Part shown: positions 5,682-63,773 of the stretch, in pieces
Layout of the letters: the number at the start of each line of letters is the position of its first letter
Numbering within the stretch: the stretch's first letter is position 1
Virus record (IMG/VR): IMGVR_UViG_3300038465_000091
Location: 159,507 to 223,506 of that record
DNA length: 64,000 bases
Reading direction: 5' to 3' (one strand)
The notes under the pieces: generated by a model
Databases searched by the model: none
What the model saw: only the letters and a program-made list of their open reading frames with translations
What the model was told of the DNA's origin: nothing
Position numbers and translations under genes: made by a program

Positions 5682-6584
5682 ATGCCTTTTACGAAGATAG
5701 CTAACGCTGCGTTACAAGAACCAGTCATCGCACCCGAGGACTGGATCAAGCTGCATGGAAAGCACGTGTTCGGGCAGAAGTCCGCCTCGGGCTCCGCAGC
5801 CGCCGCTACCTTCAGGAAGTCCGCTGACACCTCGAAATACCTCTTGTCCCACTGCACCATTATGGCAAGTGTGATGGTCGAGGCCGACCCTTACGATTAC
5901 CTAATCAAGCCAGAATGCAGTCACCTCGTCAACAACAACGATGACGCATGGACGAACGAAGTTCTGAAGCTCAGCCACAGCAGCTTTGTTGGTGCTTTCA
6001 ACTTCGTGGAACATTTCCAGAATTCCAAGTATGCGAAGGGTCACATTCTCGACGCCATTCTTCGCAAGATCAAGTTGAACGGCGATGGCTCTGTGTGGGT
6101 CTATTTCTGCGATATCCTTGTCGCCACGGACCTCGGACACGAGAAGCTGATTGACGACATCCGCAGCGAAAAGGTCAAGTACCTGAGTATGGGCTGCGTG
6201 ACCGACCTCGTAATTTGCAGCTATTGCGGTGCTCGCGTCACCGATCAAAATACCTACTGCAACCATCTGTCGTATCAAAAGGGCATGTTCCTGACCGACG
6301 ACGATGGCATTGCACGTCGTGTCGCCGAGCTTTGTGGGCACAAGACAATGGAAAACGGCGGCGTGAAGTTTGTGGAAGCTTCGTGGGTTGCTACACCAGC
6401 ATTCCCCGGGGCTGCAAAACGTAACACGGTCTCCGAAGAGTGGGAAGGACCCCGCACCAAGTACACCAAATCGTCCACCGCTGGGAAGATGGCAAAAATT
6501 GCCAGTGTGAATGATGAATTCGAAACCCTTAATCTAGGTGATGCGTTAATGAACGCGAATTTGCACGGAAGGTTGACTCGGTAA
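5682..6584 (+). CDS. Prohead (capsid maturation) protease with Zn-binding insert
   Basis: VNNNDDAW...FNFVEH...KGHILDA...YLSMGC...CSYC...CNH...FVEASWVATPAFPGA fits the HK97/herpes-type Ser-His protease pattern; sits directly upstream of scaffold, decoration and capsid genes. Confidence 0.75.
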   Translation: MPFTKIANAALQEPVIAPEDWIKLHGKHVFGQKSASGSAAAATFRKSADTSKYLLSHCTIMASVMVEADPYDYLIKPECSHLVNNNDDAWTNEVLKLSHSSFVGAFNFVEHFQNSKYAKGHILDAILRKIKLNGDGSVWVYFCDILVATDLGHEKLIDDIRSEKVKYLSMGCVTDLVICSYCGARVTDQNTYCNHLSYQKGMFLTDDDGIARRVAELCGHKTMENGGVKFVEASWVATPAFPGAAKRNTVSEEWEGPRTKYTKSSTAGKMAKIASVNDEFETLNLGDALMNANLHGRLTR

Positions 6585-9043
6585 TGGCCGATCAGAAGAC
6601 AACGCACTACAATGGCTACACTCTGAGTTACGCCAGTCAGCATGAGTCAGTGATTATTAAGTTGGACGGCAAGAAAGTTAAAACAGCACCAAACCTAGAA
6701 AAGGCGAAGGCGTGGGTGAATCAAGCGCCGGGAAGCTTTAGTAAGGGCGAGAAAAAGGCTGGTACGCTAATGGCAAAAGAAATAGTTCATTGCACAAAGT
6801 GCGGCAACATGATCGAGTCGCTCAAGCCTGAAAAATGTGAGCATTGTGGTGGCAAAGCAAAAGTTAAGAAGGGCTCTATGAAATCAAAACTAGCAGCAGC
6901 AAAAGCGGCACTTGACCGCAAGCAGGCCGATTTGGACGCTATTGACGACCAGATCATGGGTCTGGACTCTGGTATCCCAATGGATGCCCCATCTACCCCC
7001 GAATTTGACCTCCTCACTGCGAAGCGCGAAGAGCTTGAAGAAGAGATTCGCACGATGCGCGAAGGCGTTCAGTTTATCTCCGAGTGGGAAAAATTGAAGG
7101 GCGGACAGTGGTCGGAAGGTATCAAATCCCAGTTGGACGGCCTCGACTCAGAAATCGCCAATATAGCTGGCAGCGAGGGTGCCGTTGAGTCGGGTATGGA
7201 TATGGGAGCCCCGATGGGCGATCCCCTAGCCGCCCCGCCAGTTCCCGAAGCCCCAGTAGCACCAATGGGAGACGTGGCCCCTGAAGCCGCCCCAGCACCA
7301 GAAGTGGCACCCGATGCCGCCGCACCAGAAACACCCGCACCTGCCTTGGAACCTCCGATGGCGAGCGCAAAATCCGCAGTAAATAAGAAAAATAACTATC
7401 AAACCTCTCAAAAGAGGGGCAATATTGCCTCTCCCCAGATGAAAAAGGAAGGCTCCAACATGGCAAATCCTACAGCTACCAAGCCCTCGAACTTGAAAGA
7501 GAAGCTTGCTGAACTGAAAACGAAGCGCGAGACGATCAAGAGGGAAGCACAGGTTCGCACCGCTGCGGCGTATACAATCGCCAACACGATGCTGCCGGGT
7601 GCCCCCGTCGAAAAGCGTCAGGCATTCGCCTCTTCGCTACTCCAAGGTAACGACACCAAAGCCCTCGTTGCTGCCCTCCGTCAAACCGCGATCAACGCCC
7701 ACTACTCCAAGGTCGCCGAACAATTCAAGGAAGTCCACAAAGTCGAACTCAATGATCTCCTCGAAGACCCGTCCGTTCTGAAGTCCGAGCGTTCGGCTGT
7801 CGAAAAGGAAATCAAGGGTGACGCGAAGTCGGCTACCTCGAAGAAGGCCGATGACCGCAAGGACGCAGGTCCGCAGACCGAGACGTACAACGACGGTCGT
7901 GGTTGCGGCGGCGGGACTCACTCTGAGCCGAAGGAAATGGAAGCCTCGAAAGCTGGCGACCGTCCCGACGCTGGCGAGAAGCCCGGTCAGACCGTGAACC
8001 TCAGCGACGGCAAATCTGCCGCCGCAAAGAAGTCAACATGCAAGGACGGCGAGAAATGCGCGGGTTGCGAGAACTGCAAGTCCGCCGCCAAGAAAGCCGC
8101 CGAGAAGAAATGCGACAAGTGCAAGGGTGAATGTAAGTGCGCTTCCAAGGTCGTTGCCAAGGCAAAGAAGGCCGACGAGCCGCCGATGGACGCCCCCGCA
8201 CCAGATGCAGGCGCACCGCCGATGGAAGACGAAATGGGCGATGCAGGTGCTCCGTTGGATGAAGTTCCTCCGATGGACGGTATGGAAGGTGAAGCTCCAG
8301 TCGATGACGCTGGCGCGATCCTTACCGACGAGAAGAAGATGGTCGTTCAGGAGGAAATCGACACCGTTAAGGATGCCGTTCAAGCTCTTGAGCAGGAACT
8401 TCTTGAAGAGAACGAAGAAGAGATTCCGCTTGCTCTTGAAGAAGGCGAACCCTCCGAAGAAGAGCTTGACCTTTCGTCCGTGTTCGATCAGGGCGAGATG
8501 GAAGACAAAGCCGCTTCGCTTGCCAACGAAGGTGAAGATCACACCGCTGGCGACGACGGCGATGGTAACTTCTTCGCCCCAACATCTGCCGCAGGCATGG
8601 AATCAGTGCTTGACGACAGCGGTATGCAGGTAGCCAGTATCGAGAGCTATTTCGATATGCAGGGCTCCGATGCCGACCCACTGTACAGCTTGATCGCATC
8701 TGAAACCAAGGAAGCAGCATCCGTCGCTGGTTTTGACGTGCTTGAGTCCTTCACTGGTGAAGTGGCGAACAAGATGAAGCAGGACACCACTGGCGAAGCC
8801 CGCGACAACGAAGGCGACCACGACGAAGACCTCTTCGTCGAAGCAATGAAGGACATCAAGCCTGAGGAACAGGGTGCAAAGCGTACCCCGCAGGATGCAC
8901 GTCCCGAGTTGCAGGCTCCGAAGTCCGCAGCCGCAAAGACCGCAGCCAAGGCTCCCACAGGCAGCATCAAGCGTGTCCGCCCTGTCGTAGCCTCACCGAA
9001 AGCCGTTGACATCGCTACCGCGTTGTTCGGCTCCGAAGAGTAA
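6584..9043 (+). CDS. Capsid scaffolding / prohead core protein
   Basis: Coupled to the protease gene (TAATG); very acidic, coiled-coil and low complexity; canonical position between protease and capsid. Confidence 0.65.
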   Translation: MADQKTTHYNGYTLSYASQHESVIIKLDGKKVKTAPNLEKAKAWVNQAPGSFSKGEKKAGTLMAKEIVHCTKCGNMIESLKPEKCEHCGGKAKVKKGSMKSKLAAAKAALDRKQADLDAIDDQIMGLDSGIPMDAPSTPEFDLLTAKREELEEEIRTMREGVQFISEWEKLKGGQWSEGIKSQLDGLDSEIANIAGSEGAVESGMDMGAPMGDPLAAPPVPEAPVAPMGDVAPEAAPAPEVAPDAAAPETPAPALEPPMASAKSAVNKKNNYQTSQKRGNIASPQMKKEGSNMANPTATKPSNLKEKLAELKTKRETIKREAQVRTAAAYTIANTMLPGAPVEKRQAFASSLLQGNDTKALVAALRQTAINAHYSKVAEQFKEVHKVELNDLLEDPSVLKSERSAVEKEIKGDAKSATSKKADDRKDAGPQTETYNDGRGCGGGTHSEPKEMEASKAGDRPDAGEKPGQTVNLSDGKSAAAKKSTCKDGEKCAGCENCKSAAKKAAEKKCDKCKGECKCASKVVAKAKKADEPPMDAPAPDAGAPPMEDEMGDAGAPLDEVPPMDGMEGEAPVDDAGAILTDEKKMVVQEEIDTVKDAVQALEQELLEENEEEIPLALEEGEPSEEELDLSSVFDQGEMEDKAASLANEGEDHTAGDDGDGNFFAPTSAAGMESVLDDSGMQVASIESYFDMQGSDADPLYSLIASETKEAASVAGFDVLESFTGEVANKMKQDTTGEARDNEGDHDEDLFVEAMKDIKPEEQGAKRTPQDARPELQAPKSAAAKTAAKAPTGSIKRVRPVVASPKAVDIATALFGSEE

Positions 9044-10982: not shown

Positions 10983-11942
10983 ATGGCAAATCTTTCTCGT
11001 ACACAACAGCAGACGGCTATGCTTGGACAGTTGCTCAAGACCGCAGGTGGTCGTCAAAAATTAGCGGCGTCGTTGGGACCGTCCCTCCGTCGTCGTCGTG
11101 ACTATATGAGCATTGCTCGTAAGGCTCTTATGGTCGAAACTCTTCCCGATGGCGCACTCCCCATCTACGACAAGGAATTCGATGTTAGCGCGATGACTGT
11201 GGGCTCGACCCCCGGCTCGTCTTTCGTTGAAGCCTTTGTGGTCGGTGAAGAAGGCGGCGACATTGTGCGTGTGACCAAGCCAAAGCGTGTCACGGTTCCG
11301 ACGTTTGAAATCGTGTCCAACCCCATGATCCCGATCACCCAGATCAAGGAACGTCGTTTCGATCTCGTTGCTCGCTCACTCAACCTCGCAAAGGCTGAAG
11401 TAGGCGCGGCAGAAGATGGTTACGTGTTCAATCTGTTTGACGGTGTTGCGGCGGGCGCAGTCGGCCATGCACCAAACGATCCGGTTTACAACCCCGACAT
11501 TCCAATCAACGCCCCCATCGACATCAACTCGCTGGCGGATGGATTTGGTCAGGTTGCACGCCACGATCTGTCGGTTGCTTTCATCTTCTTCAATCCTCGC
11601 GATTACACGGATTTGTTGAAGTGGACGCAGCAAAACATCGACCGTGAAACACAGCGCAAGCTGTTGAAGACGGGCGTCATGGGCTATCTCTGGGGCGCAA
11701 CGCTCCTCCAGTCTCGTAAGGTCGGCTACGGCTGCATCTATATTCTGGCGGACGCTGAGTTCCTCGGCGTAATCCCAGAACGTATTCCGTTGACCGTGAT
11801 GAGTGCCGACCGTCCTGATTTGAGGCAAATCGGATTCTCGATATTTGAGAATTTGGGCTTCCTCGTCTTCAATCCTTCAGGCGTTCAGCGGTTGACCGTT
11901 AACGGTCGCTTCAACGCGGCTGCCAACTTCGGCGAGAACTAA
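10983..11942 (+). CDS. Major capsid protein (HK97 fold)
   Basis: AAGGAG RBS; RRDYMSIARKALMVETLPDGALPIYDKE...RVTVPTFEIVSNP.I...KERRFD...AAEDG...GYLWGA...GFSIFENLG; followed by a strong terminator. Confidence 0.88.
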   Translation: MANLSRTQQQTAMLGQLLKTAGGRQKLAASLGPSLRRRRDYMSIARKALMVETLPDGALPIYDKEFDVSAMTVGSTPGSSFVEAFVVGEEGGDIVRVTKPKRVTVPTFEIVSNPMIPITQIKERRFDLVARSLNLAKAEVGAAEDGYVFNLFDGVAAGAVGHAPNDPVYNPDIPINAPIDINSLADGFGQVARHDLSVAFIFFNPRDYTDLLKWTQQNIDRETQRKLLKTGVMGYLWGATLLQSRKVGYGCIYILADAEFLGVIPERIPLTVMSADRPDLRQIGFSIFENLGFLVFNPSGVQRLTVNGRFNAAANFGEN

Positions 11943-12520: not shown

Positions 12521-12694
12521 ATGCCAAACCGTAATAAGCCTACCAGCCTACAGACTGAGCCCGCATACCCAGACCATGAAACAGTGTGCTTCTGTATGGG
12601 TGCCCCCGATTTAACCTGTCATTCCGCATCAAGTCGTTGCCTCATTGAGGAGCCGCACCTGATCGTGGGATGTGGAGAATTTGACCATGAATGA
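12521..12694 (+). CDS. Small Cys/His-rich hypothetical protein (57 aa)
   Basis: ATG directly after the previous stop; MPNRNKPT...CFC...CH...C...H...CGEFDHE*. Confidence 0.35.
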   Translation: MPNRNKPTSLQTEPAYPDHETVCFCMGAPDLTCHSASSRCLIEEPHLIVGCGEFDHE

Positions 12695-12732
12695 AGTTAT
12701 TCATCTACCTAACCATTAGGTGGGGGCGTCTT

Positions 12733-15579: not shown

Positions 15580-15673
15580 AGGGACTACAAATCCGTTATA
15601 TAGGTGCCGATTAGAGCGGTTGGGAGAAAACAGATGGCTAACGAATTTTACACCTACCTGTGGGAGCATCATA

Positions 15674-21046: not shown

Positions 21047-24000
21047 ATGAAGCTGGACGCCACACAAGCGGCGGCTGCCAAGCTTTCCCACCTAATCGAG
21101 CCCGGGCGAACCGTCTATTCCACAGACGGCCACGCCTATAGGGTCTTGTCAAAGATCGCCGCTGGCGGCTCCTTGAGCTTCCGACTTGCGAACCTTCAGG
21201 GACAGCCGGTTCCAATCCCCGCAGACTTCTCCCCGATTGACGGGGCTCGGATGCGTTTCGCGTCCTTCCTGAAGTTCGCATTCAACAAAGACCTCACTGC
21301 GATTGTCAACTCACTGATTGAACAGGCGGGGCTCCCCACTGACCCAGCGATGAACTGGGCTGGGTGGTTTCAAAAGGTCTATGGCGAAATCCTAGCATCT
21401 GTTACCCCCAACTTTGATCTCCAAGACGAGATCATGTACAACACCGTCATTAAGCTCCTGATGATGCGTAAGGACAAGGACGGAAAAACACTTCTGGAAA
21501 ACGCTGCCGACAAAATTTCAGGTTTGTCCAGCGGCATTAACAAGATAAAGCGTCAACTTCGTGATCCGAACTTGACTCCAGACGAAAAGAAGACGCTAGA
21601 GAATCGACTCCACTGGCAGGAAAAAGTTAAGGCTGATCCTGTGGAGAAACAAGTCAGCAGCCTCCTGAAGAAAACTTTCGAGTATTACGCACGACATCAT
21701 GCTCGTGTGGATGCGAAAAATTACGCCTATTCGGTGCATACCCCCAGCCATCGCCTCGAAACGGAAAATATCGAAGACGTTGCTATCGAACAACCCACAC
21801 CATCTGGAGAGGGAACGTATAATATCCTTGATACCGAGGAACACGGCGTGGCTCCGGGCGTCGGACTGGGCGAGTCCGAACGCGACATCATGCAGTTCAT
21901 CGATCAATTCCAAGAGTGGGTGAGGGGCAAGGAGACCCCGAAATCCGCTCCTAACTATGCCGAATTGCTCAGGATTTACTGGGATCAGGCACAGCGAATT
22001 GACGATGTTAAGATCAGCGATCTGACTCAAGAGTGGATTCGCCGCACAGGTTTGAGCTTTGACTCCCTGAAGCAGTATCGGGATAAGCTCGGCATCCTGA
22101 TTCGAGATTTCGTCTACGAGAACAAAGTCCAACTGGGCAACTCCTACAAGTTCGTGGACTTGCTAAAGCACATGTTCCCGCCGCCAAAGCAAAAAGCACG
22201 TCCCGCCAAGGCTTCGTCCGACCACCATCACGACCGAACCGAATGCAGAAAGTGCGGCAATGTCCAGACTTGCCGTTGCCCTGCGACCAAGGTCACGTCC
22301 TATGTGGCTTCCTGCGACAACTGCAAGACGGCGGATGGTTTGGAAGCACGAGTGCTTGATCCGAACTGTCCTGAATACAAAAAATACGCCGATGATTTGA
22401 TCCGTCGCTTCGGTCAGACATCGCAGGTCTCCGAGATGCTGGGACAATTCGAAGATGAGCATTTCCCCACTTGTGTACACTGCCAGCAATACAATCAGGA
22501 TTGGCGGGCAGGTAAGGTATCAGCGGCAAAACCCAAGTGCCCCCATTGTGGCTCTGACGATTACGGCTTGATGCCCACGGACTTCGAGACCGCCAAGTGC
22601 AATGGTTGCGGCAAGAACTGGAATCATGGCATCGTCAAGGGTATCAATGATCCGAAGGAAGCTGCTCGCACGGCGGATGATGAAGGAGGGGGTAAAACGT
22701 GCGAAAATTGTGGGAGTTATTACGGTGGGTATACATGTCTTAATTGTGGGCGAAAAAAGAAGCTGGAAGAAGAGGTAGATCGTACCAGCAAGGAACTCAA
22801 GAAGTTCCCCAAGGGACCAACAGGCATGACGCCCGACGATGTGAAGGCTACTCCCGAATGGCAGGCGGCTAAACGTAATTACGGTCAAGCCTTCGCCAAG
22901 CTGCGAGAGTTCAATTCCAAAAAGTGTGCTGCCGATGATCCGACTCGTGACACCCTTGACGAGACGCTGAAGTATGACAACCCAGACAAGGACACCAAGG
23001 GGTTCCACGACCCCGCCGACCTCGGTCAATGCGCCTGTGAGTGGGATGAATGTCCGCTGGGTCACCAAGCGGGTGGGTGCCAGAATCCCGCAGCCCACAT
23101 GCTTGAAATCTATGGATACAAAACCCGCTACTGCCAGCCATGCACCGACGCAACTATCGAGTACATCCGATTGGAACAAGGCACTGGCGATCCCGATGAC
23201 ACGGTTAAGATTCTGTCCTCCGCACATACTGCTGGTGCCCCGTACTGCGACGGTTGTGATCGTCTGAAGGCAAACTGCATCTGCGAAGGCTGCGAGTGCC
23301 CAGAAAATAAAAACGCAGGCAAGTGGGGCGATAAAATCAAGAAGATGGAAGCTCGACGTGGCGAGTTCATCGAGAAAACTCTTAAGAATGCCGTAGGGCC
23401 AACGGAAGAGGATGATCTTGAGATGGCTAGGCGTGGTCCGATTCAATACGAGGAACTACCCGAAATGGAAACCCGAATTCGCCCACGAGAAGAACAGTCG
23501 AAATTTCCGACTCCTCGACCTACTACACGGCGTAAGGAGGGGATGCTCGGTCATGATTTTGTGGATGCCGATCAGCAAGCGATTCGCCCCGACATTACGC
23601 CGGGTGACACTGGGCGCTTACCTCATGGACGCACGCAGGGATCAGTTAAAGAATCTGCGGAACTTGCTGGTCGCGGCGGGGATAAAGATGACGTGCGCGG
23701 TGCGGGCGATCTGTGGCGTGAAGAGTTTTACCAAAGCGGCAATGCGCCCCCAAAGATTGCGACATCAGGTAAATGGAAAGTTCTTCTGCGGGATTCCAAG
23801 GGGAATCAGCGTGAGCAGGAGGTTTCAGGCGTAAATTACGGCTCTGCCGAACGTGCTGTGAGAAAATATATGAAGAATGGTGAAAGGGTTGTGTCGATGA
23901 CTATCGCAAGCAAGACGGCTGCCCCCGCTCCTGCGGCACCCGCACAGGCACAAGCACCAGCGCCCGCCCCAGCACCAGCAGCCACTCCCGCCCCTCCAGC

Positions 24001-26950
24001 GCAAGCGCCAAGCGCGAACACGGTAGTTGCCCCACCGCCCGGAACGCCGATTGCTCTTCCCTCGGGACAAGGAGAAGATACACCGGAAAAAAGAACAGTT
24101 CCGCCAGAAATCCCGAACAGGAAGTACCACATGACAAGTAAAAATTCCGCACTTAAAACCGAACAGAATACGCCAGAGATGGAAGCTCAGGTAGCTCAAC
24201 TGGCACAAACGAACCCGCTCACGGAGATTCACGAGAACTGCAACCCGTACTTCGAGCACGGGCAATGGTGGGTTGTCTGCGGGCCGTGCGGAGCCACTTG
24301 GTCGGTCGTTGATGTGGGTCAGTTCATCGGAGATGAGGGCGACATCGACCTTGAAGAGATTGATAACGGTGACGGTTCTTGTGCGGAGAATTTCCACGAG
24401 TCTGCCGATCACAGCAGCCCACGTCAGGGCTTCATCTATCAGGCGGAAATGTGGTGCCCGACTTGTGCGAAGGAGATCGCCGCCGACATTCAGAAGAACT
24501 ACCCTAAGCAGGTCCCCGCCGATCCAACGGATGAGTATTCTTATGATTCCGACAGCTACCCGAAGGGACCGTTCTTCGAGGAAGAATCAGACGCTCCTGA
24601 GCACTGCGCGGGCTGCCACATTTTCCTTGAGAACCCTCTGACCACGCATGGTCAGGAGTACATGCAGTCGATGGTTGACGAAGCTCTGGCGAAGGGACGC
24701 GGCGAAGAGCCGCACATCAAGGAATGGATGGACTTTTACGGCTATCATCCTGACACTGAGGGAGCCGAAGACGAACATGAGGCGTCCGCCGCTTCCGACA
24801 GAATCAATGCGATGCCGCAGCGTGGCAAGCCAAAGACTCCCGAAGAGTTGGGGCTGGTTGAGAAATCCGATACGGAACTCCGTCTTGAGGGGATTCCTCC
24901 GCGTCCTAAGAAAACCGCCGATGGCGCTTCGTTGCTTGAACCAGAAGTTAGCTTCGAAGATAAACCAGACCCCTTGCTCGACAACAGTAATAATTTGCAA
25001 AACTACAGCTATGCACCGCAGAAAGACACAACAGATAGTAGGGACACGGCCACGCTGGACGACAACATCGAAATTTTGAAACGTTACGGCTATGCCCTTT
25101 TCAGTGGTGGAAAATCGGGTGGGAAACAATTCTGGAAAAGTCCCATTGGAACTGTAGTTATCATGTCCACCAGCGGTGAGTGGATGTTTGGTGCGGACGG
25201 TACCAGAGGAACGACCAGCACGGATTTAGACAGTAAGCTTTTGAAATACCACCACAAAATGGTCCCAAAAGCGGGGGCGTCCAAAACCGCCGAAATTGAT
25301 ATGGGTCAGCTTGAGAGCGTGCAGGATCGAAAAGATCGCCTGAGCAAGCCCGACAAGAGTCCGATGTACGGCGTGACACTTCTTCGCGAACTTTCAGCCC
25401 CCGGCATTCCAAAGGGTGAAGTGATCGTGTTCGGTTATTACTACCCAGATGGGCAATGGGGCAAGCAGCAGCTTCAATGGTGGACAACGATGGCGAAGAC
25501 CGAGTATGATAGCACCGTCACTCAGGTCAAACGTCGCAGTCGCGGTACGAATCAGGAAAAGTCAACGGCCCTGTACGAGTCGTTGAAAGGACGTGGTACG
25601 GCGGTTGAGCCGGGTACGTCGTCTGACGCTATCATCGAGCAATTCAAGACGCAGAAGGAATCATCCATGGAAAACAAACAGGCTGCAATCGCACAACCCA
25701 CGTCTGGCGAGGACGAAGGCTATTACGTCAAGGTCACCTACACTAAGGGCGGTATTGATCTGAGCCCGACTGAGAATCTTCTAAGGGAAGTCGCCGAGGA
25801 GCAAATGCAGGATGAAAGCGGCAACTCGACTTATGAGTTCGCCCACAACATTGAGCTTGACGACATCTGGGAAATGATGGAGGATTTCTTCACCAATGGC
25901 TGGGAGAAAGTAAATCCCGAGGATATTGGTGCGCTAACTGACGGAGAAATCTTCTCCGATCCCAACGGCAACGTCTACTGGCATGAGCGGTATCAGATCG
26001 AAAGCATGACCGATGAACTGAAGGCAGGCAACACGGTGTTCATGCAGTACGGCGGCAATCTGTTCGATGAGGAAGATGAAGAAACGCCTGCTCCCGATCC
26101 GAACCAGATGAACCTCCCACTCCAGTCTTCCAAGAAGGAAGCCACGGGCGAGATGAGTCAGTCCGAGGCTGATGACCGTGAGGCATGGCCGATGCACCAC
26201 GCTATCGCTGACGCTCTGGGCGGCACGGTCAAGGCTTTTGACCAGTATCAAGGTCCGTACGTTCTTGTGGGCTCTGAGGCTCGCGGACAGGGCACCTATG
26301 CTCCCGCAATCCCGATGAAGGGTACCGTGCGCCTCTGGGTACAGGCGGACGAGGGTAGTGACGGGGCATTCCTGACCGTCTACAACGAAGACAACGATAA
26401 AGTTAGCGAGCCGTTCCATTGGGAAGACATGGAAGGCGCGGTCAATGCCGCCATGAGCGTAATGGGCGATGAGCCCGAGACAATCGAAGCCTCCACCAAG
26501 CAGGCGGAACTTGACATCCCCAAACCGGACAGTTGGGGGTGTACTTGTTCAGATAAAGGAGCACGCGGACAACACAAGTCCAATTGTCCTAAGGCTCCGA
26601 AGCAACGTGGCGAGTACCACGGCGCGAGTAAGCAAGCAGCGCCCGGCGACGGTGGACTACAACGCGACGTGCAGAACCAGTACGAGAACCACCCCCTGAT
26701 CGAAATGCTGTGGGGTTCCCTGAAACGTGACCCAGCGAACAAAGATCGCGTCCAGACGGCATGGGGCACCAAGACGAAGCAGGGTTTGGTGCTCAGTGTA
26801 GCTCGCGCCATGAAGGAAAGCCCCGTCTCGGGTAAAGAAAGCAGTCAGAAATGCAAATGCGGCAAACCGACAGCTAAAGGCGATCACCGCTGCGAGGACT
26901 GCCGCTCAAAACAGCATTCCGAGGCAGAAAAAGCGACTGGCGTAGAATAA
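21047..26950 (+). CDS. Giant mosaic polyprotein 1 (1967 aa), putative virion cargo
   Basis: AAGGAGG RBS; about 390-aa helical N-terminal domain followed by more than 20 short unrelated modules (many CxxC) separated by KTA/KEA/KQA/KES/HES/HEA. Confidence 0.75.
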   Translation: MKLDATQAAAAKLSHLIEPGRTVYSTDGHAYRVLSKIAAGGSLSFRLANLQGQPVPIPADFSPIDGARMRFASFLKFAFNKDLTAIVNSLIEQAGLPTDPAMNWAGWFQKVYGEILASVTPNFDLQDEIMYNTVIKLLMMRKDKDGKTLLENAADKISGLSSGINKIKRQLRDPNLTPDEKKTLENRLHWQEKVKADPVEKQVSSLLKKTFEYYARHHARVDAKNYAYSVHTPSHRLETENIEDVAIEQPTPSGEGTYNILDTEEHGVAPGVGLGESERDIMQFIDQFQEWVRGKETPKSAPNYAELLRIYWDQAQRIDDVKISDLTQEWIRRTGLSFDSLKQYRDKLGILIRDFVYENKVQLGNSYKFVDLLKHMFPPPKQKARPAKASSDHHHDRTECRKCGNVQTCRCPATKVTSYVASCDNCKTADGLEARVLDPNCPEYKKYADDLIRRFGQTSQVSEMLGQFEDEHFPTCVHCQQYNQDWRAGKVSAAKPKCPHCGSDDYGLMPTDFETAKCNGCGKNWNHGIVKGINDPKEAARTADDEGGGKTCENCGSYYGGYTCLNCGRKKKLEEEVDRTSKELKKFPKGPTGMTPDDVKATPEWQAAKRNYGQAFAKLREFNSKKCAADDPTRDTLDETLKYDNPDKDTKGFHDPADLGQCACEWDECPLGHQAGGCQNPAAHMLEIYGYKTRYCQPCTDATIEYIRLEQGTGDPDDTVKILSSAHTAGAPYCDGCDRLKANCICEGCECPENKNAGKWGDKIKKMEARRGEFIEKTLKNAVGPTEEDDLEMARRGPIQYEELPEMETRIRPREEQSKFPTPRPTTRRKEGMLGHDFVDADQQAIRPDITPGDTGRLPHGRTQGSVKESAELAGRGGDKDDVRGAGDLWREEFYQSGNAPPKIATSGKWKVLLRDSKGNQREQEVSGVNYGSAERAVRKYMKNGERVVSMTIASKTAAPAPAAPAQAQAPAPAPAPAATPAPPAQAPSANTVVAPPPGTPIALPSGQGEDTPEKRTVPPEIPNRKYHMTSKNSALKTEQNTPEMEAQVAQLAQTNPLTEIHENCNPYFEHGQWWVVCGPCGATWSVVDVGQFIGDEGDIDLEEIDNGDGSCAENFHESADHSSPRQGFIYQAEMWCPTCAKEIAADIQKNYPKQVPADPTDEYSYDSDSYPKGPFFEEESDAPEHCAGCHIFLENPLTTHGQEYMQSMVDEALAKGRGEEPHIKEWMDFYGYHPDTEGAEDEHEASAASDRINAMPQRGKPKTPEELGLVEKSDTELRLEGIPPRPKKTADGASLLEPEVSFEDKPDPLLDNSNNLQNYSYAPQKDTTDSRDTATLDDNIEILKRYGYALFSGGKSGGKQFWKSPIGTVVIMSTSGEWMFGADGTRGTTSTDLDSKLLKYHHKMVPKAGASKTAEIDMGQLESVQDRKDRLSKPDKSPMYGVTLLRELSAPGIPKGEVIVFGYYYPDGQWGKQQLQWWTTMAKTEYDSTVTQVKRRSRGTNQEKSTALYESLKGRGTAVEPGTSSDAIIEQFKTQKESSMENKQAAIAQPTSGEDEGYYVKVTYTKGGIDLSPTENLLREVAEEQMQDESGNSTYEFAHNIELDDIWEMMEDFFTNGWEKVNPEDIGALTDGEIFSDPNGNVYWHERYQIESMTDELKAGNTVFMQYGGNLFDEEDEETPAPDPNQMNLPLQSSKKEATGEMSQSEADDREAWPMHHAIADALGGTVKAFDQYQGPYVLVGSEARGQGTYAPAIPMKGTVRLWVQADEGSDGAFLTVYNEDNDKVSEPFHWEDMEGAVNAAMSVMGDEPETIEASTKQAELDIPKPDSWGCTCSDKGARGQHKSNCPKAPKQRGEYHGASKQAAPGDGGLQRDVQNQYENHPLIEMLWGSLKRDPANKDRVQTAWGTKTKQGLVLSVARAMKESPVSGKESSQKCKCGKPTAKGDHRCEDCRSKQHSEAEKATGVE

Positions 26951-26992
26951 CCAGTAAAATCCAACTTTTTGACTCATTAACAGGAGTACACC

Positions 26993-28147
26993 ATGGCAAA
27001 CAAAGTGAAGAAGGCAAATCGTGAGACCGTCCGTAAGGCTATCGTAGCCCGTCGCGAAGCTCGCAAGCAGGAAAAAGCCGCGAATTATGCAAAAATGCGC
27101 GAATGCGCGAAGTCTCCAGCGAAGTTCGCCAAGGCCCTTGACGAGCTTGTAGCGAAGACCGCACGTCAAGCCTACAGCATGGACGCCCTCCGCGAAAATC
27201 TCGGATTGGTGAAATTTGCCAAGGAAGTTCCCGCCAAGGTCCGCATCGCCGCCGCTAAGAATTACGGCAAGAAGTTTGTCCGTATCGCCGAAGAGCAGCC
27301 AGACATTCTGGCTGACGCCCTCCAGCAAGCCTACAAGGGCTTGGATGAGCAGGCAGCGGCCATGGAAATCGCCGCCGAAGCTCTGGGTATCGATCTGGGT
27401 GCCTCGCCTGCTGAGAAGGCATTCACCGACGAAGGCAAGCACGAACTTGAGCTTGGCGAAGACAAGGGCGAAGAGAAAGCGACAGAAGAAGGTCCTGATT
27501 TCGGAGCCGAAGAAGAGACCGAAGCGGAAGAAGGGGCCGATAAATTTGTATCGGATTCTGAAGCGGAGGCCGAACCTTTGCCCGAGGAAGATAAAGAAGC
27601 CAGTGGTTCCGACGCTTTTAGCACCGACCGCGACGAAGGTGGGTCGCCGAAAGCACCACAAAAGACTCAGAGCCCACAGGCTCAGGGCGAAGCGGCAAAG
27701 CAGTCGGCAGCGCAAGGCGCTGGCAAATTCGTAAAGGAAATCCCGCAGGCTCAGGGAAAGACAGCGGTCACCGAAGCAAAGCATTGTCCCGAGTGTAAAT
27801 ACCCGGGGAGAACGGTTGAACCTGAGACTGGCAAATGCCGTCATTGCAAAAAGAAAGTGATGGAGCCGTTCGACAAGAAGGCCGCAATGGGCAAGAAAGA
27901 TTTCATCGCCTTGGCGGATGCAATCAAGAACATGAGCGTTGGACCTGATGAGAAGCGAAATATCGCTGAAGGTCTGTGCGAGACGTTTCGCGCATCCAAC
28001 CCACGTTTCATGAAAGATCGTTTCATGGACTACGTTATGGGCCTCGGCGGTTCGAGTGGCGGTAAGGTGAAGCCGCAAGGAACGCCACGCCCGCGCAAGG
28101 GCGTCATTGATCCGTATGCTAGTGCTGGTGGGCATCCTTTGGAGTAA
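26993..28147 (+). CDS. Putative internal head protein
   Basis: AGGAG RBS; shares DAFSTDRDEGGSPK with ORF 1496; after KKAA carries the module MGKKDFIALADAIK...NPRFMKDRF. Confidence 0.65.
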   Translation: MANKVKKANRETVRKAIVARREARKQEKAANYAKMRECAKSPAKFAKALDELVAKTARQAYSMDALRENLGLVKFAKEVPAKVRIAAAKNYGKKFVRIAEEQPDILADALQQAYKGLDEQAAAMEIAAEALGIDLGASPAEKAFTDEGKHELELGEDKGEEKATEEGPDFGAEEETEAEEGADKFVSDSEAEAEPLPEEDKEASGSDAFSTDRDEGGSPKAPQKTQSPQAQGEAAKQSAAQGAGKFVKEIPQAQGKTAVTEAKHCPECKYPGRTVEPETGKCRHCKKKVMEPFDKKAAMGKKDFIALADAIKNMSVGPDEKRNIAEGLCETFRASNPRFMKDRFMDYVMGLGGSSGGKVKPQGTPRPRKGVIDPYASAGGHPLE

Positions 28148-41131: not shown

Positions 41132-41181
41132 GAAACCCCTTAATGAGTTGATGTTCACTAAGGGGTTCAATAGTTGTTTTT

Positions 41182-47439: not shown

Positions 47440-47477
47440 GCAAACAAAGAACTTAAGGAACGGTACAGGGTAGAATA

Positions 47478-49732: not shown

Positions 49733-49733
49733 C

Positions 49734-54831: not shown

Positions 54832-54832
54832 C

Positions 54833-55453: not shown

Positions 55454-55457
55454 ACCT

Positions 55458-58085: not shown

Positions 58086-61000
58086 ATGGCTAATAGCGTT
58101 AGTGGCAACTCAATTGCAAGCAAGAGCTTTCAGAGTCTAGCTATCTCAGAAGCATTGCTGAGCAAGACTGTCGAAGCGATTAAAGCGGGCGAAAAGGAAG
58201 CGCGGTCCACCGGGGTCCCTCAATCCTTCGAGGCCATGTATCGCGGGTTCAGGCAGAATATTGCCATCGGTAAAATTGTAGTTGTTCCTCCCGCCGTCGC
58301 TGACAAAAAGGGGCAGGATTTCCCCACGGCGCTTCTTTACGGCTGCCTTGTTCGCACTTTCGGTGGAGAAGAGATGGGCGATCTCATTTCTCACAAGATT
58401 GGTGATAGCGAATGGGACGAATATTCACAAGCTTCGTACAGTTCCATTAAAGAAGAACTGTTCGGCACGGAGGATGGTAAGTTTGCTTGCCTTGTGCTAT
58501 TTATTCCCAATTGGGTCAACAAGCGTGAGTACGTCGGCTTCCAGTTTCCGAAAGACGACAACCAGCTTACGAACCTGACACGCCATTTGGTCTTCAGTTC
58601 GTACTTCGACCCCCGCCTGTCTTCGGCATTCGATGCTATGATGACTGACGTGGAGACCTCGAAGTTCGATGTCACAGACATCACGCCGAAGCTGAATTTC
58701 CCAGCCTTGGCTGAGAATCCGCTGAAGGAATACCCGTTGCTCACCAAGGAAGGTTCACAGAAAAAGCCCCGCCTCGGACTGACCATCAAAACCGCCGATG
58801 AAGTCACCAAGGCTGTCTTGGAACCGCAGGAGATGGATGTGTTCGAATCTCTGGACACGGCTCTTCGCAACAGCCTCCTGCCAAGCGATTCCAAGGGCGT
58901 TGAGGATGCTTCCGAGGGTAAGGCTCCGACAAAGGGTGAAATGGTTCCGCGTCTCTCATCTAAAGAGGCCGAGTACCAGCCAAAAACAGGTCAACCCTGC
59001 ACTTGCCGCCCGGGTGTCCAACGTGACAACTGCCCGCAATGTGAAGGCACGGGACAGCGTATTGACTTCGCCGCTATCCGAAAGCAGAATGGTCCCAAGA
59101 GTGGTTCCACCAAGGTTGCTCACGGCTACATCGCTTTCTACGGCAACAAGCGCGTAGAAGTTCAGGCTGACACTCTCTGGGGCGCAAAGCAAAAAGCCAT
59201 CGAGATGTTGAAAGTTCCGAAGTCTAAGCAAGGGTTGCTCGCCATAGAACTTGCCGAAAAAGACGGAGAACAGGTCACCACAACAATCACGTCGTCCGCC
59301 ACTGCGGTATTCGAGACCCCGATTACAAACGTTGGTCCGGGCACCGAAGCTCACGACGAAGCCAACCAACGCACCGAAGGCTACAAGGATGAGAAGGACA
59401 CGCCAAAGGCTGTCATCAATAGCGCACCGATTGGTATCGCTCTCGACGAGACTGGCGTACCACGCCGTGCCGAGGAAGAGCGTAAGGAAAAGTCCGCCGC
59501 TCGGAATTTTTACAAACCGCCTACCGACCCTCAGGCCGAGAACGTCAAGGTTGTGGAGAACCACAAATACACCCAGTTTAACGAAAAACCAGACGGAACC
59601 TCGTACTGGAAGAGCCCCATCGGAACTACCGCTGTCCTGTACCCGAACGGAAGCTGGATGCACACGGGCGGCAAGGGAGATGGACCCAACGCTCTTAGCG
59701 AGCTTCTCATCAGCTATCACCACGAGAGGGTTCCGAAGGTCGGGAAGACTGCCGCTTATGGCGACCGTCGCGACTATCCGAAGATCGACCTATTCGTTAA
59801 CGGTGAGTACGTCGCAAGCACGACATGGGCGAGCAACATCAAGGAAGCGATCCAAAAGTACGAGGAAAAGAACCCCGGCCCGTGGGCTGGTGAAGTCAAG
59901 GCTCAATACGACAAGCGGGCTTCCGATAAGCAGGCGAAGCGCGTCGAGGGTCTCACTTCGACGGGGGATGTCGAACGTCTCGCGGCACAAACTCAGGAAG
60001 ATGATCTGAGCGCATCTGCAAGTGCGGCATGGGATGCAGCCCGCAAGGGCGGTAAAGAGGCTAAAGAGGGTCTCGAAAAACACGCCGACAAGATGAAGGA
60101 GTACGCTTCCAGCTTGAGCCAAGACAATCAGGCTCATCACGCGGTAGCCGATCACAAGAAGGAGATTGCCGCAGGTAAGTACGGGCCGACTCCACTGTCA
60201 ATCTCATCCTCGGAAAAGGATAAGGCGACCGATCCCCAAGCTGTCCGCGACCACATCAAGAAGAACGTCAGTCAGGCTCGTCAGGGTCAGGACGCTTTGA
60301 AGGATCACCATGCGTCCTTCGACGCCGAAAAATGGGGCGGGCTGGGCAAGAAGCAAGCCTCCGCTCTGTGGGTAGGCTCTGCTAAGAAAATCGCCGCTGA
60401 ATTCGACGAATTCACTCATGGCTATATCGAGACCGCTTTGTGGTCTTCGAATGATGAGTCCGATCCTAGCGGCGGACAGCCGTTGGATGCAAACTACGAC
60501 ATTCGCGACCTATCTCCGTCTTGCTTGCAGGCGATGACCGAAGATTGCGCTAAGTTCCAAGCGGAGAACGCCGAGCTTTTGGCTGCGGCATCCGAACAGG
60601 ATGGTCAGGACGGATTCCGTCAGGGTCATGATTTCTGGCTCACCCGCTGCGGTCATGGTGCGGGCTACTGGGATGGTGATTACCCGACAACGGGTGATGG
60701 CTTGACCGAGGCGTCCGAGGCATGGGGCAACGTGGACATCTACGTTGGCGACGACGACATGATCTATCAGTACGGTTCCGAAACAGGCGTAAGTGAGAAG
60801 TTCCCATCACACCAAGGACCCATGGCTAGTTCCAAGAAGGCTTCCAAGAAGACCGCTTCGCAAAACGATGCGTCCTACATTGCCAGCTTGATCGGTGGTG
60901 GATTTGGCGGCGAAGATTACGACGCTCGCTCGCAGCACTCCAAGACGGCTGCACAGAAGCGTGAAGACGAGATGGCTCGCAAGTATTCCTCTCAGCGCAA

Positions 61001-63773
61001 GAAGTTCGCCGACGTTCCTCAAGACATCGACGATATTTGGTCCGAGACGATGGAAGACATGGGGCCAGCCCCCGAGATTAGACTCCCGGGCGAAAGTATG
61101 GACAATGAAAAGTCCACCACGGGGGAACACGAGATCGAAGCTCCTGAGATGAGCGCAGACTCAAGAAGTGACGTTCCCGAGCAGGTCAAGGGCGATCAGG
61201 AAGAGCCGACCGTAAAGGTTGAAGAGGCTCTTGAGAACGATACCACCAAGTCCGAAGAAGACGAGCCGAGCACGGGCGACGATGGGGCATCGGCGGACTC
61301 GAAAGAACCGAAGTCCGAAGGTGGGAAGTCCGAATGGTCGAAGAATCGCAGCAAGGGTAAGTCAGAAAAGAAAGACGAACCAAAGGAAGAGAAAGAGTCC
61401 AAGGAAGCTTCGAAGATGGCAGCCGCCAACTCCAGACCCCGCCAGCGTGTCCATTGCGACCGCTGCGAGATGCTGAGTATTAACGGCACCGCAACCCACG
61501 AAAGGGGTTGCCCCAACCAGAATTCTCGTTGGGATTCCACTCGACAGGACTGGGTAAAGCAACGTAGGTGCGCTGAATGCGGAATGGACGTTGACGCGGA
61601 CGATCCGTGTTGTTCTGCGGAGCCTTCATTCGATGAAGACGAGGGACGTTTCGCTGGACTCGACACCATCCTTGCCGATGGTAACGAGACGGCACTGGAC
61701 CAAATGGAAGAAGCTCAAGCAACGGCACCCGCAGTATTCTACGAGTGCGGTGCCTGTGGCGGCGTTCACCCATCTTTAGAGACTTCTGAGAAGCTCGGAC
61801 TCGGCTGGAATGGCGACTGTCGCGATGAGAATGGTCATTTCGAAGAGAGTGACGTTCCTTTCGGAGACAACACCCAGCTCATCTCTTTGGATGAACAGAT
61901 GGCTCCAGATTTCGACGACACGATTCTGGCGTCGGGAGAATCCAAGACGGCGGACGGTGAACAGTTCTGTACCGAATGTGGACGCCCGATATCCCTCGAT
62001 ATGGACAGTGAGGGTGTCTCGCACCACTTAACCGATCTCGGTGAGATCGATTTCAATGCGGACGCTGACCATGTGGCTTTGGCAGAACAATTTGATGGTG
62101 GGCTTGAACAGTTCATGGAGCCCGGACACGAAGAGTCTGAGAATCCGTTAGCTGAACTTGACCAACTCATGGAGCCCCAGCACAAGCGTCGTCGCTCGTC
62201 TGAGGAAAAGACGGCAGATTATGCCGAAGATGATTTCGCATCTTACTTCGGAGAAGCGGGGAAAATTCAAGCAAATTACGCGGAAGGTGATGAGTTTCGG
62301 CTGTCTGAAGATGCCCTTGAAAATTACGGGGAAGAATATCGAGATGGGGTTTTTACAGTTGATGCAGTGTACGACCATTATGTTCCTTCATCATCGATGG
62401 GAAATGATCGGACAGGATCGCCCGGTTTCGATGAAAGTGCAGGCACCGCTCTTTACGGGTCAGAGTTGAATTTCGACGTGTATGAGTGGGAAATGGAGCC
62501 CGCAAACGCTGGGCACGAAGCATCCATTAAGCAGGCAGATACCGCTGACAATCCAGCAAACGAAGCGGACGGCGAAGGTGCCATCGAGGTCAAGACGGCT
62601 GGTCGCTCCTCTACACCGAAGTACGTGATTCGTATTCCGGGCTCTACCGACGCTGCGTGGAACGTGACTGGTTACGGGCAACAGCGCGGTGCAGGTCAGC
62701 CAAATCAAGCGAACCTCGCACGGTACATGGAAGCTCTTCTGAAGAGCATGGAACCCGGTGGGCATAACGAGCATCTGGTGGGGCATTTCGATCCAACCGA
62801 AGCTGCGATTTACCCCAACAACGGCACCTACAAGGACCCATTGGCTACATGGTCAAAGGAAGATGAGATTTATCCCAGCGATGCCGACAACGACAAAGCT
62901 CTCAAAGAAATTGAGAGTTCTGATGTAAGCGGCGACTTCTCGGAAGCTAATTCTGAGGTTGAAAGCCCAGACACAGTTGACACGGACATCAAGCAGCCGA
63001 CTGAATCGGTAGGCGAAGCTGGTAAGCACGCGGCTGACATCTCGGGGGATATCTCTGAGGCTAAGTCGGAAGTTGATTACAACAAGGCGGACGTTGCGGA
63101 CGAGGCACAGGCGACGGATACAGTTAACCCAGACCATTTCGCCGCTGAGCAAGAGTATTGGGATAAAGAAGCGGCGGATGGGTACGAAGTCCCTTCACAA
63201 TACCGTAAGGATTCCGCTGAGGACGATGCGGAACCCGCTGATGAGGAACCAGACGAGCAGCCCGCTGAGGTTGAGGACTCCGATGAGGGACCTGCCGATG
63301 AGGACAAGCCAGCAGCTAAGCCCGCCGAAACTGAAGACGAGCCTGCTGTGAAGAAGCAGACTGATGAGTCAAAGGGCAAGAACAAGCCCGCCGAGACTCC
63401 GGCTGCGGACGCGAAAGCGCCTGCGGCAGCACCAGCCGCACCCGCAGCGGCTCCAGCAGCACCAGCAGCAGTGGCTCCAGCGGCAGTAGCCGCTCCAGCA
63501 GGTGCGGGTGGAAATGGAACCTCGGAAACTTCGGGCAACGAAACATCGACCGAAACTGGCGGCTCAAGTCCGGGCGGTGCATCAACCGGCGGCGTAGGTA
63601 GCGGCATGGGTGGTGCAGTGGTCGCGGAACTCGGCACCGATGCACTTAACGCACATCAAGCTGATGATAAAACAGCGTGTGCAGGTTACGGCGATGAGGA
63701 AGATGAAGAACGCCGCATCGACTCGGGACTCGGAGACCTTGGCGATTTAGTTGTGGAGAAGGAAATCGACTAA
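58086..63773 (+). CDS. Giant mosaic polyprotein 2 (1895 aa), putative virion cargo
   Basis: About 230-aa globular N-terminal domain followed by many modules split by KTA/KEA/KVA/KSA/KQA/KIA/KFA/KMA/KHA; acidic tail. Confidence 0.75.
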   Translation: MANSVSGNSIASKSFQSLAISEALLSKTVEAIKAGEKEARSTGVPQSFEAMYRGFRQNIAIGKIVVVPPAVADKKGQDFPTALLYGCLVRTFGGEEMGDLISHKIGDSEWDEYSQASYSSIKEELFGTEDGKFACLVLFIPNWVNKREYVGFQFPKDDNQLTNLTRHLVFSSYFDPRLSSAFDAMMTDVETSKFDVTDITPKLNFPALAENPLKEYPLLTKEGSQKKPRLGLTIKTADEVTKAVLEPQEMDVFESLDTALRNSLLPSDSKGVEDASEGKAPTKGEMVPRLSSKEAEYQPKTGQPCTCRPGVQRDNCPQCEGTGQRIDFAAIRKQNGPKSGSTKVAHGYIAFYGNKRVEVQADTLWGAKQKAIEMLKVPKSKQGLLAIELAEKDGEQVTTTITSSATAVFETPITNVGPGTEAHDEANQRTEGYKDEKDTPKAVINSAPIGIALDETGVPRRAEEERKEKSAARNFYKPPTDPQAENVKVVENHKYTQFNEKPDGTSYWKSPIGTTAVLYPNGSWMHTGGKGDGPNALSELLISYHHERVPKVGKTAAYGDRRDYPKIDLFVNGEYVASTTWASNIKEAIQKYEEKNPGPWAGEVKAQYDKRASDKQAKRVEGLTSTGDVERLAAQTQEDDLSASASAAWDAARKGGKEAKEGLEKHADKMKEYASSLSQDNQAHHAVADHKKEIAAGKYGPTPLSISSSEKDKATDPQAVRDHIKKNVSQARQGQDALKDHHASFDAEKWGGLGKKQASALWVGSAKKIAAEFDEFTHGYIETALWSSNDESDPSGGQPLDANYDIRDLSPSCLQAMTEDCAKFQAENAELLAAASEQDGQDGFRQGHDFWLTRCGHGAGYWDGDYPTTGDGLTEASEAWGNVDIYVGDDDMIYQYGSETGVSEKFPSHQGPMASSKKASKKTASQNDASYIASLIGGGFGGEDYDARSQHSKTAAQKREDEMARKYSSQRKKFADVPQDIDDIWSETMEDMGPAPEIRLPGESMDNEKSTTGEHEIEAPEMSADSRSDVPEQVKGDQEEPTVKVEEALENDTTKSEEDEPSTGDDGASADSKEPKSEGGKSEWSKNRSKGKSEKKDEPKEEKESKEASKMAAANSRPRQRVHCDRCEMLSINGTATHERGCPNQNSRWDSTRQDWVKQRRCAECGMDVDADDPCCSAEPSFDEDEGRFAGLDTILADGNETALDQMEEAQATAPAVFYECGACGGVHPSLETSEKLGLGWNGDCRDENGHFEESDVPFGDNTQLISLDEQMAPDFDDTILASGESKTADGEQFCTECGRPISLDMDSEGVSHHLTDLGEIDFNADADHVALAEQFDGGLEQFMEPGHEESENPLAELDQLMEPQHKRRRSSEEKTADYAEDDFASYFGEAGKIQANYAEGDEFRLSEDALENYGEEYRDGVFTVDAVYDHYVPSSSMGNDRTGSPGFDESAGTALYGSELNFDVYEWEMEPANAGHEASIKQADTADNPANEADGEGAIEVKTAGRSSTPKYVIRIPGSTDAAWNVTGYGQQRGAGQPNQANLARYMEALLKSMEPGGHNEHLVGHFDPTEAAIYPNNGTYKDPLATWSKEDEIYPSDADNDKALKEIESSDVSGDFSEANSEVESPDTVDTDIKQPTESVGEAGKHAADISGDISEAKSEVDYNKADVADEAQATDTVNPDHFAAEQEYWDKEAADGYEVPSQYRKDSAEDDAEPADEEPDEQPAEVEDSDEGPADEDKPAAKPAETEDEPAVKKQTDESKGKNKPAETPAADAKAPAAAPAAPAAAPAAPAAVAPAAVAAPAGAGGNGTSETSGNETSTETGGSSPGGASTGGVGSGMGGAVVAELGTDALNAHQADDKTACAGYGDEEDEERRIDSGLGDLGDLVVEKEID

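Follow-up and report, generated by a model that had tools for sequence, protein, structure and literature searches.

Two giant open reading frames (ORFs) of an uncultured soil jumbo phage, separated by more than 30 kb, appear to carry the same small protein module. Is this similarity real, does it show that modules move between carriers, and what marks their boundaries? To address these questions, we analyzed a 64,000-nt stretch (hereafter, the window) that forms the end of a 223.5-kb viral contig (IMG/VR record IMGVR_UViG_3300038465_000091, positions 159,507 to 223,506). The contig derives from a jumbo myophage whose closest cultured relative is Tunturiibacter phage Tunturi 5, followed by Bacillus phage G.

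A module shared by two giant ORFs

The features of the two ORFs, termed gA and gB, are as follows.

21047..26950 (+), giant ORF gA (1967 aa): a conserved N-terminal domain (about aa 12-426) followed by an array of small cassettes
24911..24919 (+), K1289-T-A, upstream delimiter of the gA unit
24920..25051 (+), predicted disordered N-terminal extension of the gA unit (aa 1292-1335)
25052..25264 (+), predicted folded core of the module in gA (aa 1336-1406): helix, five strands, helix
25283..25291 (+), K1413-T-A, downstream delimiter of the gA unit, in a low-confidence tail
25292..25684 (+), second gA-specific unit (aa 1416-1546), ending in K-Q-A and absent from relatives at this slot
58086..63773 (+), giant ORF gB (1895 aa): an N-terminal domain (aa 1-237, ending in K-T-A) followed by a cassette array
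59490..59498 (+), K469-S-A, upstream delimiter of the gB unit
59529..59732 (+), module core in gB (about aa 482-549)
59745..59753 (+), K554-T-A, downstream delimiter of the gB unit

The sequence-only reading had proposed that one module occurs in both giants, ends at KTA in each, and has unrelated flanks. Our analysis confirms this observation, although the start given for gA, 25066, is one base out of frame; the in-frame stretch is 25067-25291 in gA and about 59538-59753 in gB. BLASTP of the two whole giants gives a single significant match, between gA 1339-1410 and gB 485-553, with 26/72 identical residues (36%), 57% positives and E=3e-11; the next best match has E=0.66. A search of the whole 223.5-kb record with the gA copy finds only itself and the gB copy (E=3.1e-13), and all-against-all BLASTP of the contig's ORFs finds no other gA-gB match and no third copy. 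Chance or low-complexity similarity, which an identity of only 36% over 72 aa might suggest, is refuted: the E value of the pairwise match includes composition correction, a two-sequence profile retrieves specific homologs at E of 6e-24 to 8e-16 from 1.84 billion representative proteins, sixteen columns are invariant across eight copies, and the domain is predicted to fold confidently.

Both copies end VPK[AV]G followed by (AS)KTA, the K-T-A triplets being gA 1413-1415 and gB 554-556, and homology stops before the KTA on the C-terminal side. On the N-terminal side, the nearest K-x-A lies 14 aa upstream of the alignment in gB (K469-S-A) and 48 aa upstream in gA (K1289-T-A). The extra gA stretch, shared with the other gA-type copies but absent from gB and from a stand-alone copy (P0004), is predicted to be disordered (pLDDT 47-53 in the AlphaFold2 model, mdbd0005ee9c1). 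In the same model the core has pLDDT 72-90 (about 88 for the folded core), whereas residues 121-124, at the downstream K-T-A, have pLDDT below 50.

The module is an autonomous domain of about 70 aa with a predicted alpha-beta5-alpha fold. It is very rare, with 4 solid hits among the 1.84 billion proteins, and also exists as stand-alone genes of 77 aa (P0004, internal to its contig) and 118 aa (P0003, found in 59 blocks of the collection). Megablast and tblastn searches of phage records with the module found nothing, and Pfam and PHROGs do not recognize it, with one of eight copies touching Pfam HicA_toxin at E=0.045. Structure searches of PDB, AlphaFold DB clusters, BFVD, the ESM Atlas and VIA-wide with the module model gave only weak matches to generic small alpha+beta sandwich domains (YgaC, Z 6.0; T4 MotA C-terminal domain, Z 5.0-5.6; HicA, Z 4.3-4.5, with Foldseek E above 0.03; frataxin). 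The order of secondary structure, helix, strands, helix, is the same, but all matches are below any reliable threshold, so no function can be transferred.

Cassette movement and the K-x-A motif

The sequence-only reading took the shared module as direct evidence that modules move between carriers as K-x-A-bounded units. The single 36%-identical pair is thin evidence on its own, but comparison with relatives supports this reading. The full-length gA ORF is conserved in independent assemblies (identical in L006 and L007; 1935 aa in L008), and with eight further members it forms a family of nine giants. With conserved blocks B, C, D and E and the module M, the order is B-C-D-M-E in gA and B-M-C-D-E in L008/P0001. 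The module is C-terminal in a 1371-aa relative and absent from 7 of 9 gA-family giants. At the D-to-E slot, relatives read DKVA followed directly by ATPQPTSGE (empty), or carry a 7-aa filler, or carry a different cassette of about 75 aa, whereas gA carries this module plus a second unit. Every piece at this slot is delimited by K-x-A, and K1289-T-A of gA aligns with the K-E-A, K-V-A or K-Q-A that ends block D in relatives; over the slots that carry the module in one giant or the other, nearly all cassettes are so delimited. The P0001 copy has lost the C-terminal K-x-A. Moreover, only 11 of 44 (25%) automatically called indel edges lie within 4 residues of a K-x-A, against about 10% expected (P=0.005).

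gB is 69% identical to the 1944-aa ORFs of L012-L015; in L012, K469-S-A is conserved, the downstream delimiter is K-S-A, and a KTA-to-KTA segment of gB (1290-1377) is absent. The cassettes of one giant are not copies of each other, as there are no self-hits within gA or gB. They include zinc ribbons, small alpha/beta domains, and families that stand alone as genes in other phages: separate parts of the giants match phrog_1915 and phrog_19202 (both in gB), phrog_7560, and hypothetical proteins of Erythrobacter phage XM05 and Xanthomonas phage Xoo-sp13. The N-termini of gA and gB match Tunturi 5 gp345 and gp350, respectively; an ESM Atlas feature search with the gB N-terminal domain gave only low-score, unnamed clusters.

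To test objectively whether K-x-A stands out, we scanned all 400 gapped residue pairs. K.A ranks second in gA+gB (after C.C, from the zinc ribbons), first in five relatives, first in the scaffold-like proteins of three related phages (55 observed, 26 expected, z=5.7), and second in seven further giants (z=7.3). KTA occurs 32 times against 4.8 expected, and the following residue is enriched for S, A and D; the commonest form is S-K-T-A followed by S, A or D. K[TQ]A occurs 11 times against 1.43 expected in gB and 7 against 1.37 in gA, although gA alone is only weakly enriched for K.A (18 observed, 12.5 expected). Sites lie in only slightly less hydrophobic surroundings than other lysines (0.237 against 0.261, P=0.017), a marginal signal, and some K-x-A triplets probably lie inside folded domains and would be inaccessible.

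Cassette gains and losses that begin and end at the motif could reflect a DNA-level signal, such as a short microhomology or recombination site. This is very unlikely: the nine bases differ from site to site, using AAG or AAA, all four Thr codons and all four Ala codons, there is no conserved flanking DNA, and the motif also occurs in non-modular proteins such as the tails of the head maturation protease (see below). Thus, K-x-A is kept at the protein level.

A candidate protease for K-x-A

The sequence-only reading gave no reason for the motif. We propose that it is a protease cleavage site. The window encodes a candidate enzyme and its neighbors.

5682..6584 (+), head maturation protease (300 aa), the proposed enzyme that cuts at K-x-A, with conserved K-x-A(S/A) motifs in its predicted disordered tails
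6584..9043 (+), scaffold-like protein (819 aa) just downstream of the protease, with 23 K-x-A sites
10983..11942 (+), major head protein (phrog_2522, E=1e-42), 71% identical to Tunturi 5 and 35% to phage G, which places the phage in the Tunturi 5 / phage G lineage

The protease matches phrog_18299, 'head maturation protease' (E=4e-15), and belongs to a large, uncharacterized family with 586 homologs at E<=1e-5 on contigs up to 894 kb. In an unbiased structure search of 48,161 chains, T4 gp21 (Z 6.5) and VZV protease (assemblin; Z 5.9) rank first and second, suggesting a herpesvirus-assemblin / T4 gp21 fold. However, the model is poor (mean pLDDT 57), the Z scores are below the caution line of 8, Foldseek gives T4 gp21 only E=0.38, Pfam gives no hit, and a sequence search against solved structures found nothing. 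K5, A9, A274 and S275 are invariant, and A7 and K33 nearly so, within the otherwise variable tails (pLDDT below 50) of 36-38 family proteases. The same motifs occur in phage G gp19 (VKTAA, VKIAP, EKVAS, LKIAS), and K-T-A-A follows the protease domain of Mycobacterium phage Tonenili. Genome-wide, the proteins most enriched in K.A cluster around the protease and the giants. An MCP N-terminal K-[TS]-A is conserved in three phages but not in phage G; it may be part of a structural helix and was not counted as evidence.

These observations lead us to infer, with moderate confidence and in the absence of cleavage data for this lineage, that K-x-A is the recognition site of the phage's own head maturation protease, with the cut most likely after the Ala. 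The giants would then be polyproteins that are cut inside the procapsid into many small proteins, each free to act on its own, probably after ejection into the host with the DNA. Packaging of gA and gB in the head rests only on synteny with structural genes and on computational labels in Tunturi 5, 'virion structural protein' for gp345 and a structure-based (Phold) 'DarB-like' label for gp350 that covers only the shared N-terminal domain. Cleavage would explain why a cassette can be inserted anywhere, provided it brings or keeps a K-x-A on each side.

Alternatively, the giants may act as intact multidomain proteins in which K-x-A is only a favored flexible-linker sequence that is never cleaved. 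Linkers here are rich in K, A, S and T, classical polyvalent proteins are often delivered unprocessed (PMC5512222), and the P0001 copy tolerates loss of the motif. We consider this unlikely, since a pure linker preference explains neither the exact K-x-A(S/A) positions that are invariant in the protease tails, out to phage G, nor the top rank of the motif in scaffold-like proteins beside the protease. In addition, the strong bias at the middle residue (T 6.7-fold, Q 3.5-fold, G 0.1-fold) is more specific than a composition effect. Another protease, host or phage, could cut at K-x-A in the cytoplasm before assembly or in the newly infected cell after ejection; post-delivery processing has been proposed for some polyvalent proteins, and our data do not fix the time or place of cleavage. 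This appears improbable, as no peptidase domain was found in the giants and the motif co-varies with one protease family across very different hosts (Acidobacteriota, Bacillus-type, Mycobacterium), which argues against a host enzyme.

If K-x-A is the cut site, it gives a simple rule for splitting giant, unannotatable ORFs of environmental jumbo phages into their real functional units, each a candidate host-takeover or anti-defense protein. It also predicts the specificity of the protease family and explains how such phages try out new small proteins without new promoters or packaging signals. More tentatively, jumbo and mega phages that carry this protease family, which spans the Tunturi 5 relatives, phage G and Bixzunavirus, may encode true polyproteins, arrays of dozens of small proteins released at K-x-A inside the capsid and injected with the DNA. 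The motif would act as a universal 'socket' that lets any small gene be plugged in, moved or swapped between carriers, a modular system for evolving the injected protein repertoire with a protease specificity not yet described for phages.

Comparison with known systems

Polyvalent proteins of phages and conjugative elements (Iyer, Burroughs, Anand, de Souza, Aravind 2017; PMC5512222) are likewise very large proteins that string together many unrelated domains, with mosaic architectures between close relatives, domains that also occur as solo genes, genes next to late or virion genes, and proposed delivery with the DNA. In gA and gB, however, Pfam detected no hallmark polyvalent-protein domain (LPD families, MPTase, ART, methylase or helicase), giving no hit at E<=0.1 for gB and only two sub-threshold hits for gA, and there is no embedded peptidase. 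The cassettes are tiny (about 30-130 aa) and are separated by one recurrent three-residue motif that also marks the phage's own head protease.

Assemblin-family proteases generally read a P3-x-P1 pattern: V/L/I-x-A followed by S in herpesviruses, L/I-x-E in T4 (gp21), and S/A/G-x-E in phiKZ and SPN3US (gp175/gp245). In herpesvirus assemblin maturation and release sites, Ala is at P1, Ser is at P1', and sites lie in the protease's own polypeptide. The protease family here has an invariant A-S pair preceded by K (or M) two residues earlier, but P3 is Lys (sometimes Arg, Met or Leu) rather than a branched hydrophobic residue, and the hosts are bacteria. In T4, phiKZ and SPN3US, an assemblin-fold protease is encoded beside the scaffold and capsid genes, and its short motif recurs many times in head-internal proteins and in the protease itself, with several cuts per substrate documented (PMC10052503). 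The motif here would be K-x-A; in the literature searched, we found no description of such a prohead-protease motif or of phage polyproteins of this kind. In SPN3US, apart from the protease's own self-cleavage, all identified cuts release N-terminal propeptides (PMC10052503), whereas here the pieces between the inferred cuts are independent folded domains that shuffle as cassettes.

A shared module in two giant proteins

The window holds two very long ORFs, and BLASTP of the two whole proteins against each other gives exactly one significant alignment.

21047-26950 (+): gA, 1967 aa
58086-63773 (+): gB, 1895 aa

The alignment joins gA 1339-1410 to gB 485-553 with 36% identity (E=3e-11), and everything else has E of 0.66 or worse. 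A search of the complete 223.5-kb record finds only these two copies, and all-against-all BLASTP of the record's ORFs finds no other gA-gB similarity. Both copies end VPK[AV]G and are followed within 0-2 residues by K-T-A. The similarity is therefore real, far beyond chance, and confined to one unit. These results confirm the observation made in the sequence-only reading, that the same module occurs in both giant proteins; the start coordinate of that reading was one base out of frame, but both peptides that it aligned are present.

The window is the last 64 kb of a 223.5-kb IMG/VR viral contig, estimated 71% complete. In addition to the giants it encodes tail-fibre-like proteins with ice-binding-like and DUF2793 domains, GIY-YIG homing endonucleases and a sugar-modification gene cluster; these and other features are listed below.

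119-1036: C-terminal part of a tail sheath gene
5682-6584: head maturation protease, assigned by PHROG
10983-11942: major head protein
12691-13629, 54755-55453 and 40406-41170 (- strand): GIY-YIG (NUMOD3) homing-endonuclease paralogs; with further copies elsewhere in the record there are at least six scattered through the genome, one just upstream of the gB gene cluster and one between head and tail genes
15620-19102, 39009-40448 (-) and 41182-43695 (-), also genome 53038-56238 and 97142-103354: five large proteins that share an ice-binding-like beta-solenoid domain (PF11999), at up to 80% identity between copies, and look like a diversified set of tail fibres or receptor-binding proteins
26906-28135 (-) and 26993-28147 (+): two long ORFs on opposite strands, almost completely overlapping, just downstream of gA; neither has a family hit, so the true gene is unclear
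28643-29299 (-): a 217-aa ORF that matches only the first 73 positions of the 253-position D12-class N6-adenine methyltransferase profile and may be truncated or divergent
43815-53028: a run of glycosyltransferase and nucleotide-sugar epimerase genes (phrog_3317, phrog_540 twice, GtrB-like), suggesting modification of host surface sugars or of phage DNA

The closest cultured relative is Tunturiibacter phage Tunturi 5, a 309-kb soil myophage of Acidobacteriota with 71% major-head-protein identity, followed by an uncultured 485-kb phage and Bacillus phage G and, more distantly, the Bixzunavirus mycobacteriophages. Synteny with Tunturi 5 is clear. Its gp345 ("virion structural protein") matches the gA N-terminus and its gp350 ("DarB-like antirestriction protein") matches gB 5-264, although these labels are computational, made with Phold.

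To find further copies of the module, we searched 1.84 billion representative proteins with a two-sequence profile, which returned only four solid hits: P0001, a 1915-aa gA ortholog; P0002, a fragment of a 1371-aa relative; P0003, 118 aa; and P0004, 77 aa. P0004 is a complete gene inside its contig and consists of little more than the module. P0003 is a complete stand-alone gene seen in many soil assemblies; in the soil metagenome contigs L016-L019 (gene at 6001-6357) it lies among small unannotated ORFs and chromosomal-looking genes (acyltransferase, HAD hydrolase, alanine dehydrogenase, a large FG-GAP protein) and carries its own K-S-A-A near the N-terminus, and it may be a remnant of a mobile element. 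IMG/VR adds gB-type copies in 1944-aa ORFs (L012-L015) and gA-type copies (L008-L011).

An AlphaFold2 model of the whole K-x-A-bounded gA unit (aa 1292-1415) has a confident core at aa 1336-1406, with pLDDT of about 72-90, composed of a helix, five strands and a helix. The 44-aa N-terminal extension and the last residues, including KTA, are predicted to be disordered. Fold searches in five libraries give only generic alpha+beta sandwich matches (YgaC, the MotA C-terminal domain, frataxin and HicA), all with Z of 7.2 or less and Foldseek E above 0.005, and one of eight copies touches Pfam HicA_toxin at E=0.045.

Cassette positions and the K-x-A motif

The sequence-only reading had further proposed that modules move between carriers as K-x-A-bounded units, and comparison with relatives supports this view, with exceptions. 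gA and its ortholog L008/P0001 share collinear blocks B, C, D and E, but the module lies between D and E in gA and between B and C in P0001. In L010, which has a gA-type copy, it is the C-terminal unit. Of nine giants that share the gA N-terminal domain, only gA and P0001 have the module. The D-to-E junction takes four states across this family. In P0131 and P0134 it reads SSEDKVA/ATPQPTSGE, which is the empty state; in P0132 and P0001 the same junction contains a 7-aa filler ending K-K-A; in P0130 and P0136 it holds a different cassette of about 75 aa, flanked by K-E-A; and in gA the order is K-T-A, the module, K-T-A, a second unit, K-Q-A and block E. The B-to-C slot behaves the same way, being empty in P0134 (GSKEA/AELAGR), while other cassettes there end KKTA/AELAGR. 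gB and L012 differ by a segment that runs exactly from one KTA to the next. In contrast, the P0001 copy ends VPRMG/SELSGR with no K-x-A, and among automatically called indel edges only 11 of 44 lie within 4 residues of a K-x-A, against about 10% expected (P=0.005). We nevertheless hold the cassette architecture with high confidence.

The motif is enriched. K[TQ]A occurs 11 times in gB (1.43 expected) and 7 times in gA (1.37 expected), and the two giants hold 18 of the 62 K[TQ]A in the genome. In a scan of all 400 X.Y patterns, K.A ranks second in gA+gB, after C.C, which comes from zinc ribbons; first in five relatives (z=4.1); first in the scaffold-like proteins of three phages (z=5.7); and second in seven further giants (z=7.3). 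The middle residue is biased, with T 6.7-fold and Q 3.5-fold enriched and G 0.1-fold, the following residue is enriched for S, A and D, and the residue before the K is enriched for S. Codons at the sites vary freely, so the constraint is on the protein and not on the DNA. Two further features of the gB region involve the same motif.

55365-57545: a 726-aa protein two genes upstream of gB, also enriched in K-x-A (14 observed, 6.6 expected); no family library recognises it, and it may be another protease substrate
63200-63770: the gB C-terminal region, a long acidic, Pro/Ala-rich, low-complexity tail, followed by a conserved K-T-A and a conserved final 50 residues that are 86% identical to L012; this last unit may matter for targeting or assembly

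A proposed link to the head maturation protease

The ORF at 5682-6584 matches a PHROG head maturation protease family (E=4e-15). An unbiased structural search of 48,161 chains ranks T4 gp21 (Z 6.5) and varicella-zoster protease (Z 5.9) first and second, with cytomegalovirus protease also listed, but the model is mediocre and the support for the fold assignment is at most moderate. In an alignment of 36-38 family members the catalytic core is highly conserved, whereas the N- and C-terminal tails are variable and predicted to be disordered. Within those tails the conserved positions are K5, A7 and A9, K33-x-A-S, a K-x-A-A, and an invariant A274-S275 preceded by K or M. The protease also carries a conserved zinc-ribbon-like insert, in which C179, C182 and C193 are invariant and H195 nearly so.

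Similar motifs are found in relatives. Phage G gp19 has VKTAA and VKIAP in its N-terminal tail and EKVAS and LKIAS in its C-terminal tail. In the Bixzunavirus Tonenili, a Mycobacterium phage, the protease domain is the N-terminus of a 1236-aa protein and is followed by NNKTAAD. The scaffold-like protein next to the protease has 23 K-x-A sites, and the proteins most enriched for K.A relative to their own composition cluster around the protease and the giants. A K-[TS]-A triplet at residues 19-21 of the major head protein (10983-11942) is conserved in this phage, Tunturi 5 and LR745208, but not in phage G, and could be a maturation site or just part of a conserved helix.

Assemblin-family proteases typically recognise P3-x-P1 and process their own tails, with V/L/I-x-A↓S in herpesviruses, L/I-x-E in T4 and S/A/G-x-E in phiKZ, and K-x-A↓(S/A/D) fits that pattern. 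We therefore propose that the giants are polyproteins cut at K-x-A by this protease. No termini have been measured in this lineage, and cleavage is inferred; we consider it more likely than not that K-x-A is the head-protease site, whereas packaging and ejection of the products is only a tentative suggestion.

Comparison with known systems

In the literature searched, we found no description of a K-x-A specificity or of such cassette polyproteins. The giants resemble polyvalent proteins (PMC5512222), in that they contain many unrelated domains, are mosaic between relatives and lie next to late genes; however, no hallmark domains of polyvalent proteins and no peptidase domain were detected in them by Pfam. 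The proposed logic is the same as that of the internal or ejection proteins of T4, phiKZ and SPN3US that are processed by prohead proteases, but the motif differs. In SPN3US, apart from the protease's self-cleavage, the identified cuts release N-terminal propeptides, whereas here the pieces between the sites are independent, shuffling domains.
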